A stretch of 64,000 nt of DNA, from contig CP075494.1 of assembly GCA_021613535.1 (NCBI GenBank), forward strand, positions 6,510,001 through 6,574,000. Direction: 5' to 3'. Of this stretch, positions 3,124 to 52,483 are shown in pieces. Below the pieces are notes generated by a model that was not told where the DNA came from, did not search any database, and worked only from the letters and a program-made list of their open reading frames with translations. The DNA comes from Adineta vaga. Its lineage: Eukaryota; Animalia; Rotifera. The translations under genes were made by a program, and so were the position numbers. The first letter of the stretch is position 1. The number at the start of each line of letters is the position of its first letter.

Positions 3124-3982
3124 TGTCGGTATAGTAAGACTTATTTCCAAGAGGGAATCTGTCTGATGAATGTTTCGTAATGAAATTTTACATGAGATTT
3201 TATTCTTCGGACATTTCGTTGGTGATTTAAAGGCTTTAATTTTAATTATATTAAGCACAGGTGAATAAGCAAAGAAGAAAAGCTTGTTTTTCTTGCAATC
3301 TTTCTCATTAAAATCAAGAATAATATTGACATGATCAAATTTCAAAGTTAATTTTCTTTTTTCTTCGATTTTGATTCGTCATAGACTCAAAAACACGAAA
3401 ACAGAAACCTTATAAATCACATCATTCGATCTAATCTACTTTTGAAATGTCCTTTCGACGAATAGTCGAGATTTCAGTACAAAATCAAATTCATCAAAAA
3501 ATATTCTGCAATATATATTGATTTATTTGCCAAGCCGCAGTATGAAAAACTTGATGTAACTCATAAGGAATGTTCAAATCTTTTTGAAGTTGTTTGACGA
3601 ACAATAAATTTCTTTCAAATCAATTCTTTATTATATCATCTTCTTTTTCACATCCGTAAAAATAGACAAGAGAGAGAGAGAGAAAAAACGTCCAAAATTC
3701 GTAGAAAAAAAAGAAGAAGATCGTATTCATGCATCGTGAAAAAATAGCTATAAAACAAAAGAGGAGGAGAAATATTGATTAGATATTTAACAATTAATCA
3801 AAAAAAGAAACATTTTTTCTTTGATTTATGTTTGATCAACAAAAAGAAAAGCATGCATGTCGTTCGTAGAATATTGACAACGAGAAAGAATAGTTTCTGT
3901 TTTTTTCAATTCTTTTTTGTTGCTTAATATTAAAAAGAAAATCAATGGGATAGAAAACAATGTGCAACACATCGAAGATCTT

Positions 3983-6900
3983 TTAGAAAAAGCCAAGCGG
4001 TTTTTTAATGTTTGTTTGTTTCCAATATGGCAAAGCATAGAATTCATCTTTAGTTAAATTAAATTCTTTCTAAAAAAAACCATTAAAATCAATTATTCTA
4101 CAATGAAAGTGAAAGTAAAAAGAAATATACTTGGAAATCAGCATCAGAAAGATAAAATTCAATTTTTGAAGGATCAACACCTGAACATAGAAGATTAGTT
4201 TCATTTCATTAATTTATTCAAAATTCAATACCTTCTGGCAATGGACGAGCTCGAAGTTCTTCAATACTATATTGCTCACGACATAATTGATTGAGTATAT
4301 CAATAACTGAATCTTTTTGATTGATTTTTTTACCTTCCTATATTCATTCGAATTGAGGAATAAAATAAACATGGCAATTCAAGAAACTTACTAATTGATT
4401 TTTTTGTCGAGCTTTAATATGTACATTCCATTTTGGAAATAAATTAATGAAATCAATTGGTTCTAAACCAGCATAAACAATTGAACAAGGTAAATCAATA
4501 GTTGATGAACCAGTTTTTGCTAAATATGAAGAAGTTTTTCTATTTAAAAAAATTGAAATATATTAGTTTACCTTTGTAGTAATTAATTGCAGTAAGAAAT
4601 GCACAACGACGTTCTGTAGTAAATCGAATATCTCTTGGACCACGTACTAATGCATTTGTATTCGAAAGTTGTGAACCATGTTCATGATCAGATTGATCAT
4701 TCCATCCTTGCCATATATATAATTCAGCATTTGTATCAATTAAACATAATGCTGGTTGATGAAGTTCATAGAGATCAGATTGAGTAAATGGAAATGCTGA
4801 GATATGATTCGGAGAACGAAGAGGATAAAGAAGTTCTTGAGCAACAAATGGACCATGAAGACTCGATAAATGAAAGATACGCATCGTTGATGCAAGTTTT
4901 GCAATGGATTGTACTAGCAAAAAAGAAAGTTGAAAATCTTGTTTTCAATTAATTAATTAATTTAGCTTACCATTTAATAATGAATAATATCTTCGTTGAT
5001 GATTTCGTTCATTCATTCCTTCCCAAAACAATTCAATTTCATCACCTTCTTGCATTTCAAAAAATTCAATATCTTCACTTTCACCATCGAAATGAAATTC
5101 TTCGGGACATCTAAATATATATATATATATATAAATGAGATACTAGAATATCAACCATATATTCCTACCGTTCACGCAATTTTATCACGGATTGATGAGC
5201 TAAAATTTGTTGTTCATCTGTTGTACCACAACCATGCCAAAGTAACATTAAATTTTCCTGATTATTGATTAATAAAAACGATGTTCGACTACGTAAATTC
5301 GCTGTAGTAATATACAATTCCCACCAATGTGTTTCTTCATGAAGTTCACCAAGAAAAACATATAGATGCCAATTGGATTTTGTTTCTTCCAATTGATTAT
5401 GTTTACCCATATGAATAGTTAATGTACCATCAAATAATTGTAAAAATGTTGGATCTTCATGTTCTTGTGTTACATGAATCTAATTGATATATAGATTAAA
5501 CTTATCAATTCAAATTAACGTTTTAAAACTTACATGTGGACCTTTTTCTTCATCGAAAAACGTGGTCATTAATGCTGAAATACCCTTTTCATTCGGATTT
5601 GTATTTGCACCTTGCCAGATCCAATAAGCAATTCGATTTCGACCTGTATCAGATTTTTGTGTGGATGATTTGCTATTTACTATTGCAACTAGTTTATATC
5701 TCCAACGAATAATATAAACCTCATCCGAATAGAATTGACCATAACTTGATTTCGGTACTTCATGTCGATCATTCTCACTTATATACCAAACATCCAATGA
5801 AATTGTTTGAACTTCGTGTCCACGCATTTCAACAGGATCAAACCAATGTTTTCCTCGACCTAAACTAGCTTGTTCAACAATTAAATTGACTGGAGTATCT
5901 GCTTTAGCCAGCATGTTCTTCTCATCAGCTGGTTTAAGTGTATCAAGAATCGATGGTGGCTAAAATGTACAATAAATCTATCTCATTTTTGTCAACATAA
6001 TCATGAATACATACACGTTGTGAAGACAGTGCTTTATTAGTATTATTTGTTGATTCATTGGTTGGTTTCAATTCTTGAAGATCATTTGGCCAATCATAAA
6101 ATTTTCCTTTAAACAATAATGTTTCCACATTCTGATTTTGTTTACCAAATATACACCATTCTGATCGAGTCGTACCGTGTGAAATAGATGGATCATATTG
6201 ATCTAAACAAAGAGTACACTTTCAATAGTATTCATTGTTGTCTAATAATTTACCATCAAATGGATCAAATGGATCGATAGGAGATTCACTATAATCGTAT
6301 GGATCATTCCATAATTGTTGTCCTAATTGTAAACCCATATTTCGTTTTGTTTTATCGGCAAATTTACCATTCCAAACATATAATTCGGCACCGAAATCAA
6401 ATACAAAAACTTCATTAGGATCAAGAATTTGAATTGATAATGAACGAAAACAGAAGTTCTCTAATGGCATCAATAAATCATTTTCTACTCGATAAACACG
6501 ATTTAATTCTGTAATATTTGTTTCATAGAAATTATCATCAGTGACTTCATTCATTGATTTATAATAATCAATTTCACCATGTAACATATCACGAAATTCT
6601 GCATGACTATCATCTTCTGTATCATCTTTAGCTTGATCTAAGATGAAATATTTGACTTCATTACGTAAACCAAAATCACGATGTTGTTTTAGATAATCAA
6701 TTATATCTGTTGTTCTTGCTTTTTCTAATGTATTTGCATAACGACCAAGCCAAGCAAAGACTTTCAATGGTGTTATTAATAGATAACAATCACCTTCATT
6801 GATTGATTCATAAACTGGATTAATCAAGCGTAATGAACATTGACGATGGCCTTTTATTAAGATAAGCATAGTTTCTTTGTAGGGTTCATAACCAAATTTA

Positions 6901-44991: not shown

Positions 44992-45838
44992 ATAAAAAAC
45001 ATGATTTAGCTTAACAATCTTTCTTTTATTTATAAATATTTCATATATGTTGTTCTCCGTGTATTTGACAAAAGCAAAGCAATTGATTCTATATTGTTAT
45101 TGTTTATTTTATGTCTTTCTTTCAGTGAAACAAAAAAAAACATAACTTCGCTTGTAAATAAACGTAGATTAAATGTCATTTTTAATGATTTGAGATGTAG
45201 AATAGGAGACTAATAATCTTTCATAATTCTATACAAAAAGATACTAATTAAATCATTTAATTAAGAAAACTAAGGTAATTAAGTATGTTCTTACAATGAA
45301 AAGATATGCACTTCTTAATCGGTTCACTTTCTTTGTTCATCTATTGTTGAAATGACGTATGTTTACCTCGATTTGTAGAACTATATCTGTTAACAAAAGA
45401 ATTCTTCAAATGTAAGAAAGAATGATTTTCTTCTTTTTCCTCTATCGATTATTCTGTACTTGTGAATTTGATAGTTAGAATTTGTCTTTTCTTTCATCGA
45501 GGTAATTCTATAGTTCTTTCTCTTTCTATATCGATTTCTTATATATCATCATCGATAGATGTGTGATAAAGAAAGACAGTCGAGGTCTATCTGGTGAGAT
45601 CAAGAAAAATCTAGTGAGAGAGAGTGAACAAATAAGTGATATCATCGTCAGTGATCGAAAGTAGAAAAGCCGCTTTTCGTGGTTGTTTACCTTCACTTTG
45701 CATACGAACGCCGTCAACGTCGGACGCAAACGCGCATCAGATCAATAGAAGGATAATCAGAGAGGAGAGACGGTTACCTATCGTCATTTCTATATACATA
45801 TTATCGACATCAGCGTCGAATTTACAATAAGCTCAAAG

Positions 45839-48800
45839 ATGAAACAGGCATGTGAATCAAAGATTTTTTATTAATTAAATTAATGAATAACTCATTTTTA
45901 TTTTACAGGTTCATTTGAAACTGTTATTGTGTTTTTTATTGGCAACTAGTGCCACTGCCCAAATGAACAGTAATAGACAAATTCATATATAATATCATTT
46001 TAGGAGTTTCTCTTTTATCTGCTTTTCATTAGGTATGTTTGGCGGTTTTCCTACAAGTAATTCATTAGGTCAACAATTCGGTGCGGGTGCCGGAAGTTTT
46101 GGTGGTGTGGGAGGTTTAAGTGGTATGGGAGGATTAGGTGGTATGGGAGGTATGGGAGGTTTAGGTGGTATGGGAGGAATGAACGGTTTTGGTGGTTTCG
46201 GTAACGGCGGACAATTTCAACAGCCAAATGCTGCATCAGCTTGGTCAGGTTTTGGACAAACTGGTTTTGGTCAACAGCCAGCTCAACAACCAGCTCAACC
46301 TGCTGTCGATCAAACTAGTGCCGTCCAACAACCAGCTGCAGCTCCAGTCAGTCAACAAGCAGCACCAGCTGAAGATTTTTCGGCATCAGCTGCCTCAGTT
46401 AGAACTGTACAAAATGATAATTCAGGTAGCAGTGGTTATGGTGGCTCATCATATGGTAAAAGCAGTGGTTACGGTGGTTCATCATACGGTAACAACAATA
46501 ACTACGGTGGTTCGTCATATGGTAATAACAACAACTACGGTGGTTCATCATATGGTAATAACAACAACAACTATGGTTCATCTTATTCTGAACCAACTTA
46601 TGGTCAACCCTATGGTATTCAATCTACAGGCGAATATACAACCTATTATCCAGAAAAACTCGATCTCTCTCGATGCGGACCAAGTAACATTTAATAAACA
46701 ACTGAATATACATATATATATTTATGACTTTATTCTCTTCTTTCTTTCAGCGCCAACCGAAAATCCATGCACAGCTTATGGCCCACAATATTATCCATTA
46801 CCTGGTTACCCACATTGTTATATTCAATGTGCATTTGAACGAATGTTCGTTAAACCATGCCCAGCTAATCTTGTATGGAATACTCGTATAAATGTTTGCG
46901 ACTGGCCAACAGTTGCTCCTGCTGGTGGTTATGATAATTATGGCACAACATCATATGGAAATAGTGGAAGTAGTGGAAATAGTTATGGTTCATCATCACC
47001 ATCATCATATGGTGGTGCATCTACTTATTCTTACGGACGAAAGAAACGATCAACAACTGAACGCAAGAAACGCGGAGGTTATGGTGACAGTTATGGTAAC
47101 GGTGGAAGAAGCAGCGGTGGTTATGGTGACAGCTATGGTAACGGTGGAAGAAGCAGCGGTGGTTATGGTGACAGCTATGGTAATAGTGGAAAGCATAACA
47201 GTGGTTATCGATCAAATCGTGACAGAGGATATGGTGGTTCGAAAAAGAAACATGGTTATGGTGGTTTTCCTGGCATGTTCGGAGGACCTTTTCCATTTCC
47301 ACCTCTTCCACTTGGTAAATATAATCATTTTGAATTTTCTATTATAAATTGTAATTCTCTATTATTTTAGGTCTACCATTAGCTCCATTTGCATTACCAG
47401 GTCCAGTTGGTTTTCCAGGTTTAGTCGGATTACCAGGTCTCCCACCTCCATTTGGTATTCCTCCACCAATGTAAGTTATATAGACTGCAACTATTTTAAA
47501 TTATAATTCTGATAAATTCTACAGTCCACCCATCGGCGGAGCTCCAATCGCTCCACCACCAGTTGGTGGTCCGGTTCCAGCTCCAGCTCCAGCTCCAGCT
47601 CCAGCTCCAGCTGCTGCTGCAGCTCCACCTCCAGCTAAAGCTGGTCCAGCTCCATCTTATGGTGGTGGTGGTTCATACGGTGGTTCATATGGTGGTTCAT
47701 ATGGTGCTCCTGCTAAAGCTGCTCCAGCTCCCGCTCCCGCTCCAGCTCCAGCTCCAGCTCCAGCTGCTGCACCAGTTGCTGCAGCCGGTCCAGTTGCAGG
47801 TGGTGTCCCTCCACCTGTTGGCGGTATTGCTCCAGGAATAGTTCCGTAAATTTCCAATACATTTATATATAGAGATATAGAATTTGTGATATCATTCGAT
47901 TTTAGACCACCTATACTTCCACCACCAATCATTCCACCCATCGGTCCATTTATTCCACCAATGCCTGTTCCTGTATCTGCTACATTAAGTATGTTTTCAT
48001 TGATACATTTGACTTTATTATTTTCATTTCTCTTACGATTAGTCCCTGGTCCATTGTTTCCATTTGGTCCTCCATTTGGTGGTCCGTTCGGTGGTCCAAT
48101 TGGTGGCCCATTTGGTGGTCCTTTCGGTGGTCCACTTGGTGGTCCACTTGGTGGCCCATTCGGTGGTCCGTTTGGTGGTCCAATTGGCGGTCCGATTGGT
48201 GGCCCATTTGGTGGTCCGTTCGGTGGTCCAATTGGTGGTCCAATCGGTGGTCCATTCGGTGGTCCATTCGGTGGTCCAATTGGTGGCCCATTCGGTGGTC
48301 CATTTGGCGGTCCATTCGGTGATTTTGGCTTCGATCCATTTTTAGGTGGTGGTTATGCTGATCCATTATTCGGTTTCGATCCATTCTTCGATGGACCATT
48401 TGGTGTTGATCCATTATTTGATGGCCCATTTGGTTTTGATGCTGGGTAGGAGTTCTTTCATACAATAAAGTTTTTCTTTTTTTATGATGTCTTTTACTAA
48501 ATCTTTTCTTTTCCTATAGTTTCGATGGATATCCATTCGATGACTATCTTTATGATGATTTCAATGCTTAGTAAGTACATCCAGATCCTCGATTACATAG
48601 TTAATCCTTTAATGTAATTTTTCTGCGGTTTTTAGTGGCAAACCATATGGTAAAAATTACGACAAAGGTTATAAAAAATACGGTAAAAGTGGTTATGATA
48701 AGAAATATTCGTAAGTTGATTGTTTCCTGCCTTCCAAGAATTAATCATATCAAATTTTTTCTTATATATAGTTCATATGATGACTATGATTATCCAAAGA

Positions 48801-50385
48801 AATCGGATTACAGCAAGTGAGTAAATATTATTTAGATAATAACATATTTCAATTCTTCTTGTTCTCTAGAAATGGTAACTTCAAAGCTTATGGAGGTAAA
48901 AGTAAATACACCAACAACAAATATAACGACAACTACAACTCTGATAAATATAATAAAAACTCTAAATATGATGATAAATATAACTCAAACGATGACTCGT
49001 ATGACTATCGTAAGAAACGTCAATATGATGCAACTGAAGAACAAGTACAACCAGCTGTTGTAATTCCACAAGAAGATAAATATCAAAAATCTTTTGTTCC
49101 AGCTTCAGCTTCATCCTATGGTTCAATACAACAACAACCCCGTTTAATTGCAGCAAAACAACGTAAAGTTCACTTTTGAAATTCTGCCATCTATTATCGA
49201 ACTTATCGTCTTTCATTTTTTATTTAGCATCACCATGCACTGGTAAAGAACCAAAAACCAATGTTGCACATCCAACAGATGCTAGCAAATATATTGCATG
49301 TTTAAAAGAAGACAATTATGAAATTATGGATTGTCCAAATGATCTTATCTATAATGCTGCTGCTGATCAATGTGAAAAAATAAAAAATACTGAAAGTCTT
49401 TGTGAACGTGATCAACCATGTATGAATGATGGTCAATGTCATCAAACAAGTCCGTCATCATACAAATGTACTTGCCGTGCAGCATGGACAGGTGAACGAT
49501 GTGAAATTCCTCTTTCATCTTGTGCTGCTGATCCATGTGGTCAAGGTAATGAATGTCATACATTAAAAACCAAGGATTATGCTCAAGATTTCGTTTGTGT
49601 TTGTGATGGACGTCAATCATATGGTTTAAGTTGCGGACGAAATACCGTTCCAAATCCATGTTTAGCTGCATCATCTGAACAAGAACAATATTATCCATTT
49701 GCATTCAGTGCACAAGCTTTTGTTCAATGTAATGGTGATTTACTTTATGTTCGTCCATGTGCCGAAGGTTTATACTGGAATCAAGAAAACAAAATCTGTG
49801 ATCGAATTGAAACATCACCAGCTCCACCAGCTTTAGATCAAACTCCATCATATCAAGTTACTTATGGTAGCCAACAAACACAACAACCAGCTTATAGCCG
49901 CCCAACAGCTAGTTTTGCTGATCAAGCTCCAATTCAACAAAAAACTTACCAACAACAAACATTCCAACCAAAAACAATTCAATTCAATAATCAAGGGTAC
50001 AAAATGAAAATATTCGTTTTTCAACAGCTATACATTTGATTTTGTTTTATTTAGTTCATCATCATCGTACGGATCAGCAAGAAACCAATATGCTGCACCA
50101 CAACCATTACTTTTCAAATCCTTCCAAACAGTTAATCGTAACTATCAATCACAACCAAAAGCTATTAACAGTTATGGATCAGTTCAAGAAAAAGAACAAC
50201 AACCAATTCCAGTTATTCGATCATCTTGGACACCAACAATGATTCGATCATCACCTGTTGTTAATACAAATCAACAATACGGCTCATACAATCAACAACC
50301 AGTTCGATCTTTCACACGTGTATTTCAACCTGAACCATCTAGAAATTTAAACCGTGAATTATCAGGATCAGGTTATCGTCGATAA
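45839..50385 (+). CDS. Secreted ~1250-aa repetitive structural polyprotein: signal peptide, Gly/Met/Tyr/Pro-rich blocks, 3 chitin-binding type-2 (CBM14-like) domains, 2 EGF-like domains, 3 RKKR sites
   Basis: 14 exons join in phase without stops when spliced by hand. Starts MKQVHLKLLLCFLLATSATA|Q. CBM14-like C..YIQC..PCPANLVWN..CDWP, HPTDASKYIAC..CPNDLIYN..C and AFVQC..PCAEGLYWN..ICD. EGF CMNDGQC..CTCRAAWTGERC. Ends SGSGYRR*. Confidence 0.88.
46435..46583 (+). repeat. Coding tandem repeat YGGSSYG(K/N..)
   Basis: About four units, ~33 nt each, encoding YGGSSYGNNNN-like peptides. Confidence 0.85.
47074..47184 (+). repeat. Coding 42-nt tandem repeat GGYGDSYGNGGRSS
   Basis: Two full copies plus a partial third, near-identical at DNA level. 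Confidence 0.9.
47576..47764 (+). repeat. (CCAGCT)n Pro-Ala tracts flanking a GGSY block
   Basis: Two (PA)n runs separated by YGGGGSYGGSYGGSYG. Confidence 0.85.
48078..48317 (+). repeat. 20 x GGP[F/I/L] 12-nt coding repeat
   Basis: Counted from the translation; codons vary synonymously between units. Confidence 0.92.
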
Positions 50386-51478
50386 GATAATCATGTGTAT
50401 AATATGATCGATTTGTTTTTTGTTTCGTGATATGTTTGTGTGCCATATCGATCTTTTCCTTTTACCTGTTTTTATATCTTGACTTATATTCATTTTCGCT
50501 TTCCTTCTCTTCTCTCTCTTATCTATTCGTTTTAGCTTTATTTTATTTGTTTACGAACTGCATATCTGATGCAAATGAACGTTTTATTTAAAAACGAATA
50601 AAATGCATCAAAGTTTTGAATAGATTTTTTCTTTACATATTATATAACGATAATATTCAATGTCTCAAAGCAATTAACACAAACGTAAAGGTAATGATAA
50701 TTAGAACAGAGAATCAGTTATCTTTCTTAATTATATTTAAAATATCTTCATGTCAAATGTCATCTGGCTAATAATTATATAATTATTATTTGAAAACAGC
50801 TATTTATTATCGAAATGTTATTTAAAAACAATCGGACAGTTATTCGTTGAGTCAGTGGAAACATATGTATACATGTTTGTTTCGATACAATTTTAACTAA
50901 AATTGGTTTCTCCTGTTCCAGAAAAACCTATAAAAATGATTCATTTTACTGTCACAACCTATATACGTCTACATTATGATGCGCTTTGATTGATATGTAA
51001 TAGCACTCAATATGAATCATCAAAAATTCAACATGAAAGAAGTAGAATGATATGAATTCAACTAATTCAATTATTTGTATTTATTTAAATAAACTGTTGG
51101 ATTTCGTTTGTATTTTCATGCTATCGTATTATGAATATGATTAATTAGTTCGAAATTAAGTAAATGCACGCATGACTGAAGGTAAAAATTATTGCAAATA
51201 CTTTTCAATCATGTTTGATTATAAGCATCTCTTTTTTTTGCTCTCTTCTCTCTCTCTCTCTTCTTCTTCTTCTTCTTTTTCTCGTGTTCTGCTCGATTGA
51301 ATGCGCCTTCTCATTTGTAAGAATACAAAATATCACTAGTCGATGAAAATGAGTATAAAACCTTGATCAATTACTTCTATTTGAATACAATAAGCTATTA
51401 TCTGTCTACTCTTTCCCTTCTCCCATCTCGCTCTCGCACGTCAATAACGTCCCTAGCTGCTTTTTTACTCCAAAATTG

Positions 51479-52483
51479 ATGTCTTTCTTTCGCCAAATAT
51501 TCGGTAGAGATCAACCAAGTGATAATCTACGTATTATTATAACAAGACATGGTGAACGAGCTGATTTAACATTAGGAAAACAGTGGTTAAATAAGTTGGC
51601 ACGCAATGGTGGTGATCCTCGAATACCGCATTTAGCACAACGACCACAATTTCGTGATTGGTATTATGATTCACCATTAACAGTTGATGGAGAACGTCAA
51701 AGCGCAAATGTTGGTCACAGATTACTTCAGATGGGTTATCGTATTGATTATTGTTATTCATCACCTGCCTATCGATCCGTACAAACAGCAACAAAAATCC
51801 TTGAAAGTCAAGGGCAGAAAGCCGTACCGATCAATATCGAACCCGGTAGATAAATAAAAACAATTTGTGTTATTTGTATAATAAATATTTAATTAACTTT
51901 TTTCTTTATCATCGAAGGTCTCTTTGAATGTCCAGCTTGGTATGCAGGTAGACCTTTAGTATTCGTTCCACCAGAATACCTAGCTGCAGATAAAAATTTC
52001 AATGTTAATCCTAGTTATGCACCTGTCTATAGTGGTGTTGATGCAAGCGAAGATGAACGAGCATATTATCGACGATCTCGACATCTTATTCGTGAAATTA
52101 TTCGTGCACATAAAGGCCAAGGAGGAACTGTATTGTTATCAGCACATGGTGGTTCTATAGAAGCAGTATCACGTGGTTTACGTGGATTACGTCAACGACG
52201 TGGAAGACCTGAACATCTAATTCAAGAAGCATTAAGAGTTGATTATAATAATTTTGCTATTTTAGAACGTGATGCACGTACACGAGATTGGATTGTTCGA
52301 TTACCAGAATCATACAATAATCCTTATGGAGCCCATTTAACTCGACAAAGTGTCATTCCACTCTATGGTATAGCTACAGAACATATTACTCACCAAACAA
52401 TGGGACATTTACGACCGCAAGCAACGCGTTCAGCACGTCGTCGTCAGCAAAGTCGTCATCAACATCATCGTCATCATCGTTAA
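51479..52483 (+). CDS. Histidine phosphatase (PGAM superfamily), Sts/UBASH3 / ecdysteroid-phosphate-phosphatase-like, standalone domain
   Basis: TRHGERAD, DSPLT, YSSPAYRSVQTA, IEPGLFE, LLSAHGGSI. One intron at about 51846-51917. Confidence 0.88.

Follow-up and report, generated by a model that had tools for sequence, protein, structure and literature searches.

What does the region at positions 45839-50385 (+ strand) of a 64,000-nucleotide stretch of the bdelloid rotifer Adineta vaga encode? The stretch, hereafter the window, is contig C5:6510001-6574000 of an assembly of 100.8 Mb in six chromosome-sized contigs. An earlier reading of the DNA, the original prediction, proposed that scattered open reading frames (ORFs) in this region splice into one secreted, furin-cleaved, chitin-binding polyprotein, a candidate undescribed cement, jaw or eggshell system. 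We conclude that the locus belongs to a real, conserved and undescribed bdelloid gene family, and that its product is probably the precursor of a chitin-associated extracellular structural matrix, which convertases would cut into three pieces.

Gene model and orthologues

The DNA of this region is eukaryotic and rich in AT, and its introns are short. Exons were chained, starting from the ORFs, by choosing donor and acceptor sites that left the reading frame uninterrupted. The splice model rebuilt from the sequence has 14 exons on the + strand, namely 45839-45847, 45909-45969, 46033-46683, 46751-47314, 47371-47470, 47525-47845 and 47906-47988 (exons 1-7), and 48043-48445, 48520-48570, 48636-48710, 48772-48816, 48870-49162, 49228-49996 and 50055-50385 (exons 8-14). 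These join into one open frame of 3756 nt, coding for 1251 amino acids plus a stop codon with no internal stops and beginning with a signal peptide recognised by eye, in agreement with the secreted protein of ~1250 amino acids that had been proposed. Antisense and out-of-frame ORFs in the repeats were rejected as genes, being by-products of repeat composition.

All 13 introns are 53-74 nt long. Twelve are of the GT-AG type and intron 1 (45848-45908, 61 nt), which splits the signal peptide, is GC-AG (CAG/GCATGT, the slash marking the junction). At the same place an ohnologue on another contig of this genome, described below, has a GT donor. A Logan contig from a relative (L015; 3664 nt; run SRR28338167) exactly skips these 61 nt when aligned to the window, which validates the GC donor of intron 1. 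L015 holds an uninterrupted ORF of 1046 amino acids (P0005), running from the signal peptide to the C-terminal domain module, and since the genomic orthologues have ~13 introns, it behaves as a spliced transcript. Three further intronless contigs (P0199, P0200 and P0202) span the third basic site, the module and the tail. The residues at the junctions of our model agree with those of the orthologues (SATL/IPGPLFPFGPP, SRCGP/TPTENPC and MKQ/VHL).

An exhaustive HMMER search was made with exon 13, and searches were otherwise made with single exons. The matches were proteins of 944-1909 amino acids with the module near the C-terminus. Single gene models were found in Adineta steineri (P0002/P0154), Rotaria sp. 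Silwood1 (P0003), Rotaria sp. Silwood2 (P0006), R. magnacalcarata (P0007/P0177) and Didymodactylos carnosus (P0004), all with the same order of parts: signal peptide, low-complexity sequence, CBM14, basic sites, Pro/Gly-rich low-complexity sequence, basic site, module and tail. As far as the searches reach, the family appears limited to bdelloid rotifers. All orthologues are annotated as 'unnamed' or 'uncharacterized' and no named family matched, which bears out the earlier statement that the architecture belongs to no named family. A search of the literature on rotifer trophi and eggshell proteins, Adineta chitin-binding proteins and rotifer convertase substrates returned nothing on this polyprotein family.

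Could the region instead hold two or three separate genes, one for the N-terminal CBM14, one for the low-complexity sequence and one for the CBM14-EGF-EGF-CBM14 module, with continuity arising from chance exon phase? Stand-alone paralogues of the module, lacking the upstream pieces, do exist at C5:10.02 Mb, C2:8.4 Mb and C6:1.75 Mb, and the model of the window copy was built purely from genomic sequence. Every gap between coding pieces, however, is 53-74 nt long and carries splice signals; introns of this size leave no room for separate promoters, and no second start or second signal peptide was seen between the coding pieces of 45839-50385. The pieces are also joined by independent gene models in five other bdelloid species, the junctions are spanned by the intronless contigs, L015 among them, and the ohnologue is collinear. 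We therefore regard separate genes as very improbable. The evidence supports, indirectly, one gene for a large secreted precursor rather than two or three, as first proposed.

Precursor layout and candidate convertase sites

The predicted signal peptide (MKQVHLKLLLCFLLATSATAQ, amino acids 1-21, 45839-45962) has an n-h-c layout with A-x-A before Gln, judged by eye, and is conserved, the orthologues starting with MKQVHL, MKQIHL or MNQIRF. The first predicted piece, P1, continues with low-complexity sequence (45969-46607, 25% identity to orthologues) made of a Gly/Met/Phe block, a Gln/Pro/Ala block and four copies of a YGGSSYG repeat. It is followed by a conserved island (YSEPTYGQPYGIQST...EKLDLSRCGP) that leads into the six-Cys CBM14 no. 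1 (46584-46914, assigned by Pfam, 73% identity to orthologues), a region interrupted by the intron at 46684-46750. Tandem basic sites 1 and 2 (47038-47073) then read RKKR-STTE-RKKR and are conserved. The second piece, P2 (47074-49008, exons 4-12, amino acids 349-838), comprises 490 amino acids without a single Cys, is 24% identical to orthologues and consists of GYGDSY repeats (three copies), a Pro-rich stretch with two (PA)n runs, an unbroken run of 20 GGP[FIL] copies (48078-48317), an acidic aromatic block and a Tyr/Lys/Asp/Asn block; the acidic blocks of the protein lie at amino acids 689-747. Basic site 3 (49009-49020), RKKR followed by a conserved Gln-Tyr, opens the way to the P3 module, in which a CBM14 with four Cys, two EGF-like units and a second four-Cys CBM14 follow one another (49233-49799, assigned by Pfam and an AlphaFold model, 69% identity to orthologues). 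The protein ends in a Gln/Ser/Tyr-rich tail (49806-50385, with the intron 49997-50054 inside) that closes with SGYRR and the stop codon. All of the blocks, domains and the STTE spacer listed in the original prediction were recovered.

The window copy (50371-50385) and P0002, P0006, P0007, P0199, P0200 and P0205 all finish with S-S-x-Y-[RK]-[RK] followed by the stop codon. This conserved dibasic C-terminus could be subject to carboxypeptidase trimming or act as a sorting signal.

With a curated cut-off of 22.1 bits, Pfam CBM_14 matched exon 4 at 31 bits (E 2.8e-7) and exon 13 at 48.1 bits (E 1.3e-12, two stretches), and each orthologue likewise had three CBM_14 stretches. CBM14 no. 1 has six Cys, at residues 238, 247, 263, 267, 277 and 290, and two six-Cys EGF-like units lie at amino acids 944-977 and 984-1021. 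The AlphaFold model of the P3 module, built on 18 homologues, had a mean predicted local distance difference test (pLDDT) score of 80.6. Its best Foldseek match was Aplysia EHEP (E 7e-6). The CBM14 of CHIT1, Der p 23, tachycitin, Avr4 and Blo t 12 were matched at probability 0.94-1.0, these single-domain CBM14 matches having weak E-values (0.05-0.3) over only ~50 aligned residues, and Notch EGF repeats at probability 0.3-0.5. Taken together, the sequence places the protein in the broad CBM14 superfamily (peritrophin-A, PF01607). No VWA domain was among the Pfam matches of the window exons or the orthologues, and no Rebers-Riddiford domain (PF00379) was among the Pfam matches of the window exons at E up to 0.1.

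Since tachycitin and Der p 23, antimicrobial and allergen CBM14 proteins, are among these fold matches, the product might be convertase-processed and yet non-structural, for example an immune lectin or antifungal set that binds chitin, or a peritrophic-like gut mucin, with the low-complexity parts as spacers. Bdelloids do face fungal pathogens, and chitin-binding domains of rotifers have been discussed as lectin-like (PMC8878817). However, repeats of the structural-matrix type, rich in Gly, Pro, Tyr and Gln, make up ~70% of the protein, the order of the composition blocks is conserved across genera, and small Cys-rich products resembling antimicrobial peptides are not evident; we consider a non-structural role quite improbable. 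The order of the P2 blocks is kept across genera even though the sequence diverges, with PGPV and ATLIPGP as the only conserved islands. Such retention of block order without sequence conservation is typical of disordered, material-forming proteins, a class to which P2 would belong on this criterion.

The proposed processing depends on the basic sites. RKKR starts at amino acids 337, 345 and 835, that is, at 47038-47049, 47062-47073 and 49009-49020, exactly where the original prediction had placed it. Three occurrences compare with 0.0017 expected from the composition of the protein (0.065 for R-x-[KR]-R), and all three lie in Cys-free low-complexity flanks. Eight full-length proteins were aligned and identity to the window protein was scored. 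It reached 0.93 at site 1, 0.86 at site 2 and 0.96 at site 3, against 0.20-0.29 in the low-complexity parts, with 0.21-0.29 in those that flank the sites, and 0.69-0.73 in the folded domains. Site 3 is the most conserved of 974 low-complexity 4-mers, site 1 is in the top 5 and site 2 in the top 15. All eight orthologues (8/8) retain site 1 in the form R-x-K-R, and 6/8 retain site 2; site 3 is present in 8/8, so the conservation check that had been suggested for the sites came out positive across Bdelloidea.

The variants found (RNKR, REKR, RRKR and RKRR) alter only motif position P3 or replace Lys by Arg at motif position P2, exactly the changes that the convertase consensus R-x-[KR]-R permits, and a pattern not expected of a mere patch of charge. 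In the ohnologue the tandem sites read RKKRSTVERKKR and site 3 is RKRR (YYRKRRNY); in Didymodactylos the tandem sites keep the four-residue spacer as RKKRQLLNRKKR and site 3 is RRKR, as it is in contig P0202. Gln-Tyr is conserved directly after site 3, and the predicted signal-peptide cut likewise exposes a Gln; both exposed Gln residues could be converted to pyroglutamate. The convertase P domain (PF01483) was detected at at least eight loci of this genome, and 19 kexin-like genes have been counted in A. vaga (bioRxiv preprint 10.1101/802215). A reading of the basic clusters as nuclear localization signals was rejected, given the signal peptide and disulfide domains.

Basic junctions of a similar kind were seen elsewhere in the wider family. 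In the two-module proteins of Didymodactylos (P0008, P0011 and the C-terminal half of P0004), Y-R-R-K-R-Q-Y or KKKRRRRQ lies between the modules amid Gln/Ser/Tyr-rich sequence, so that a junction of a basic site plus Gln recurs there. More remote proteins that carry a comparable module (P0068, P0073, P0125, P0136, P0137 and P0193) have no RKKR site.

Instead of being cleaved as predicted, the secreted protein might work intact, as one long matrix protein with three chitin anchors, its RKKR clusters serving as basic patches for acidic partners (glycosaminoglycans or its own acidic blocks) or as cross-linking or sorting motifs. The acidic blocks at amino acids 689-747 could indeed pair with the basic ones, and site 2 is dispensable in two orthologues. 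The pattern R-x-[KR]-R is nevertheless kept even when charge is lost (Lys to Glu or Asn at motif position P3), which is a better fit to a protease motif; in addition, the sites fall precisely where domain-bearing pieces meet domain-free ones, the conserved Gln comes directly after site 3, and convertases are abundant in the genome. An uncut protein is thus an unlikely explanation, and the predicted cleavage at the basic sites of a structural precursor is well motivated on these grounds.

Several observations weigh against a convertase-cut, chitin-associated precursor, besides the purely genomic origin of the window copy's gene model. Two Rotaria orthologues lack site 2, with RKKL and LVKI in its place; the four-residue spacer is therefore not essential, and site 1 seems to make site 2 redundant. 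Each of CBM14 no. 2 and no. 3 has four Cys, a reduced variant of the domain. The EGF match (PF00008) in the window copy scored 20.6 bits, slightly under the cut-off of 21.5 bits; the D. carnosus orthologue gave 35.7 bits in the same Pfam comparison. The structure of EHEP was solved with tannic acid, so that a CBM14 fold does not guarantee chitin binding, and CBM14 folds are not always chitin binders. The ORF of L015 ends before the conserved C-terminal tail, with tail-like sequence following out of frame, so the tail may be variable or the contig imperfect. Finally, the sequence data favour no particular tissue.

Ohnologue, paralogues and flanking sequence

A six-frame search of the same genome revealed the collinear ohnologue on the minus strand of contig C2, at 13.357-13.367 Mb. 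This copy is described here by its collinear ORFs, not by a finished splice model. It is 66% and 58% identical to the window gene in the two module exons and has the composition blocks in the same order, with extra exons for a Frizzled-type cysteine-rich domain. That domain follows the N-terminal Gly-rich block and precedes the SSYG repeats in the ohnologue (L011 reverse-complement ~1498-1968), Rotaria Silwood2, R. magnacalcarata (P0007) and D. carnosus (P0004), and is lacking from the window copy and its Rotaria counterparts; Pfam Fz confirmed it in the Rotaria Silwood2 and Didymodactylos orthologues. In a tree built from the module, Adineta and Rotaria polyprotein genes form one clade (support 98/97), with the D. 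carnosus polyprotein outside it. Within this clade the ohnologue groups with the genes of A. steineri, Rotaria Silwood2 and R. magnacalcarata (support 88/86), and the two versions therefore seem older than the split between Adineta and Rotaria.

In the ohnologue, a mini-exon (RPPIPPPFFG-like) and a 53-nt intron are also repeated together in tandem, about every 80 nt (L011 reverse-complement ~3663-4074, C2 ~13.3629-13.3633 Mb). Duplication of entire exon-intron units seems to be how its Pro-rich block expands.

The stand-alone CBM14-EGF-EGF-CBM14 paralogues map to C5:10020119-10020717, C2:8405512-8406264 and C6:1749660-1750319 (L012, L013 and L014). Those on C5 and C2 are each located downstream of a gene that is GST-like and has a long tail rich in Pro, Gln and Ser, and the C6 paralogue is flanked on both sides by Gln-rich repeats.

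Upstream of the start codon, a leader or promoter-proximal region (45640-45838, + strand) is ~75% identical to the sequence upstream of the ohnologue and to the 5' untranslated region of L015, the latter alone giving 76% identity to the window upstream of the ATG. In a comparison of window 45640-45838, L011:9253-9460 (minus) and L015:1-137, the leader shows much stronger conservation than the low-complexity coding sequence does, and it may be a shared regulatory leader. Two small putative hairpins are conserved at ~45769-45785 and ~45807-45823, with G-U changes and one compensatory change among just three sequences. Rfam returned no family for the 5' region, a match to mir-320 reaching 17 bits against a cut-off of 55.5.

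The next gene downstream (51476-52483) begins ...RIIITRHGERADL..., has the look of a histidine phosphatase (phosphoglycerate-mutase-like) by eye and appears unrelated.

Proposed products and known systems

Considering the layout above, the signal peptide would be removed and kexin/furin-type convertases would cut after amino acids 340/348 and 838 in the secretory pathway, so that a single round of translation would yield equal amounts of three products. P1 (~32 kDa) would be a Gly-rich low-complexity arm ending in the six-Cys CBM14; P2 (~49 kDa) would be Cys-free, disordered and rich in Pro, Gly and aromatic residues, with a Tyr/Lys-rich end; and P3 (~46 kDa) would carry CBM14-EGF-EGF-CBM14 and the Gln/Ser/Tyr-rich tail. 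P1 and P3 may anchor on a chitin scaffold, P2 and the low-complexity arms acting as a compliant or adhesive filler, and the richness in Tyr, Lys and Gln raises the possibility of oxidative or transglutaminase cross-linking.

As to where such a matrix might be built, chitin is not, to our knowledge, a component of the secretion of rotifer pedal glands, and for this reason cement is the weakest of the cement, jaw and eggshell options put forward by the original prediction. We would tentatively name the pharyngeal jaws or cuticle first, the eggshell second and some other apical matrix third, each as a possibility. Almost nothing is known about the molecules from which rotifers build their jaws and eggshells. 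Chitin is present in rotifer trophi (Klusemann et al. 1990, as cited in PMC5995198). A bolder proposal, which we offer as possible but doubtful, is that a lineage-specific polyprotein cut into stoichiometric chitin anchors (P1 and P3) and a free elastomeric or adhesive P2 builds a hard or elastic structure of bdelloids, and that two ohnologous versions, with and without the Frizzled-type domain, have existed since before the Adineta-Rotaria split. The most attractive candidate structures for such a one-gene composite are jaw hinge or ligament material and a desiccation-tolerant eggshell.

The family itself was correctly called undescribed, in that no paper on it was found, but the principle has a precedent in molluscs (PMC5379566). 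Bivalve Pif/BMSP is one secreted precursor cut into Pif 97, a chitin-binding protein of the peritrophin-A type, and Pif 80, a low-complexity matrix protein, which act jointly on a chitin scaffold (PMC5379566). The rotifer protein, whose cut is predicted, resembles it in combining a processed chitin-binding piece with a low-complexity matrix piece; it differs in lacking VWA, in having three pieces instead of two and an EGF pair, and in its non-biomineral setting. Pif is cut at a dibasic Kex2-like site. Outside CBM14 the two have no sequence homology, and Pif/BMSP is an analogue of the rotifer protein, which is not a member of that family.

Peritrophins, the insect CPAP/obstructor proteins and the nematode eggshell proteins CBD-1 and CPG-1/2 share with it secretion, CBM14 and its fold, and often low-complexity linkers. 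Peritrophin-A proteins, however, are mostly CBM14 arrays with mucin-like linkers, and the CBM14 domains of the rotifer module have four Cys, not six. We know of no peritrophin-A/CBM14 protein that unites CBM14-EGF-EGF-CBM14, elastomer-like blocks and conserved convertase sites.

Resilin joins Gly/Pro/Tyr-rich short tandem repeats to a chitin-binding domain, a likeness to the rotifer protein by composition only. Equally by composition only, the rotifer Gly/Met/Phe block recalls the repeats of abductin and (GGPx)n those of Pro-Gly elastomers. Elastin and flagelliform silk belong with abductin to this group of elastomeric matrix proteins. The chitin-binding domain of pro-resilin is of the Rebers-Riddiford type, whereas none was reported by Pfam in the rotifer protein, which has no sequence homology to pro-resilin and whose elastomer role is putative. 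The Gly/Met/Phe, GGPx and Tyr/Lys blocks are similar to known elastomers and adhesives and could for that reason be of interest in materials science.

The pharyngeal cuticle of C. elegans is chitin-based and combines chitin cross-linkers with abundant disordered, phase-separating, secreted low-complexity proteins (PMC9629831). These proteins have no homology to the rotifer protein and come from many small separate genes expressed in waves, whereas anchors and filler are fused in one precursor in the rotifer.

Were the basic sites uncut, the protein would simply be a large lineage-specific chitin-binding matrix protein. The gene and its ohnologue provide a specific candidate, open to experimental test, for a composite of chitin and protein in Gnathifera. 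If the proposed processing holds, the fusion of anchors and filler with conserved cutting sites would be a compact design for stoichiometric biomaterial assembly, and an independent reinvention of the principle of mollusc Pif.

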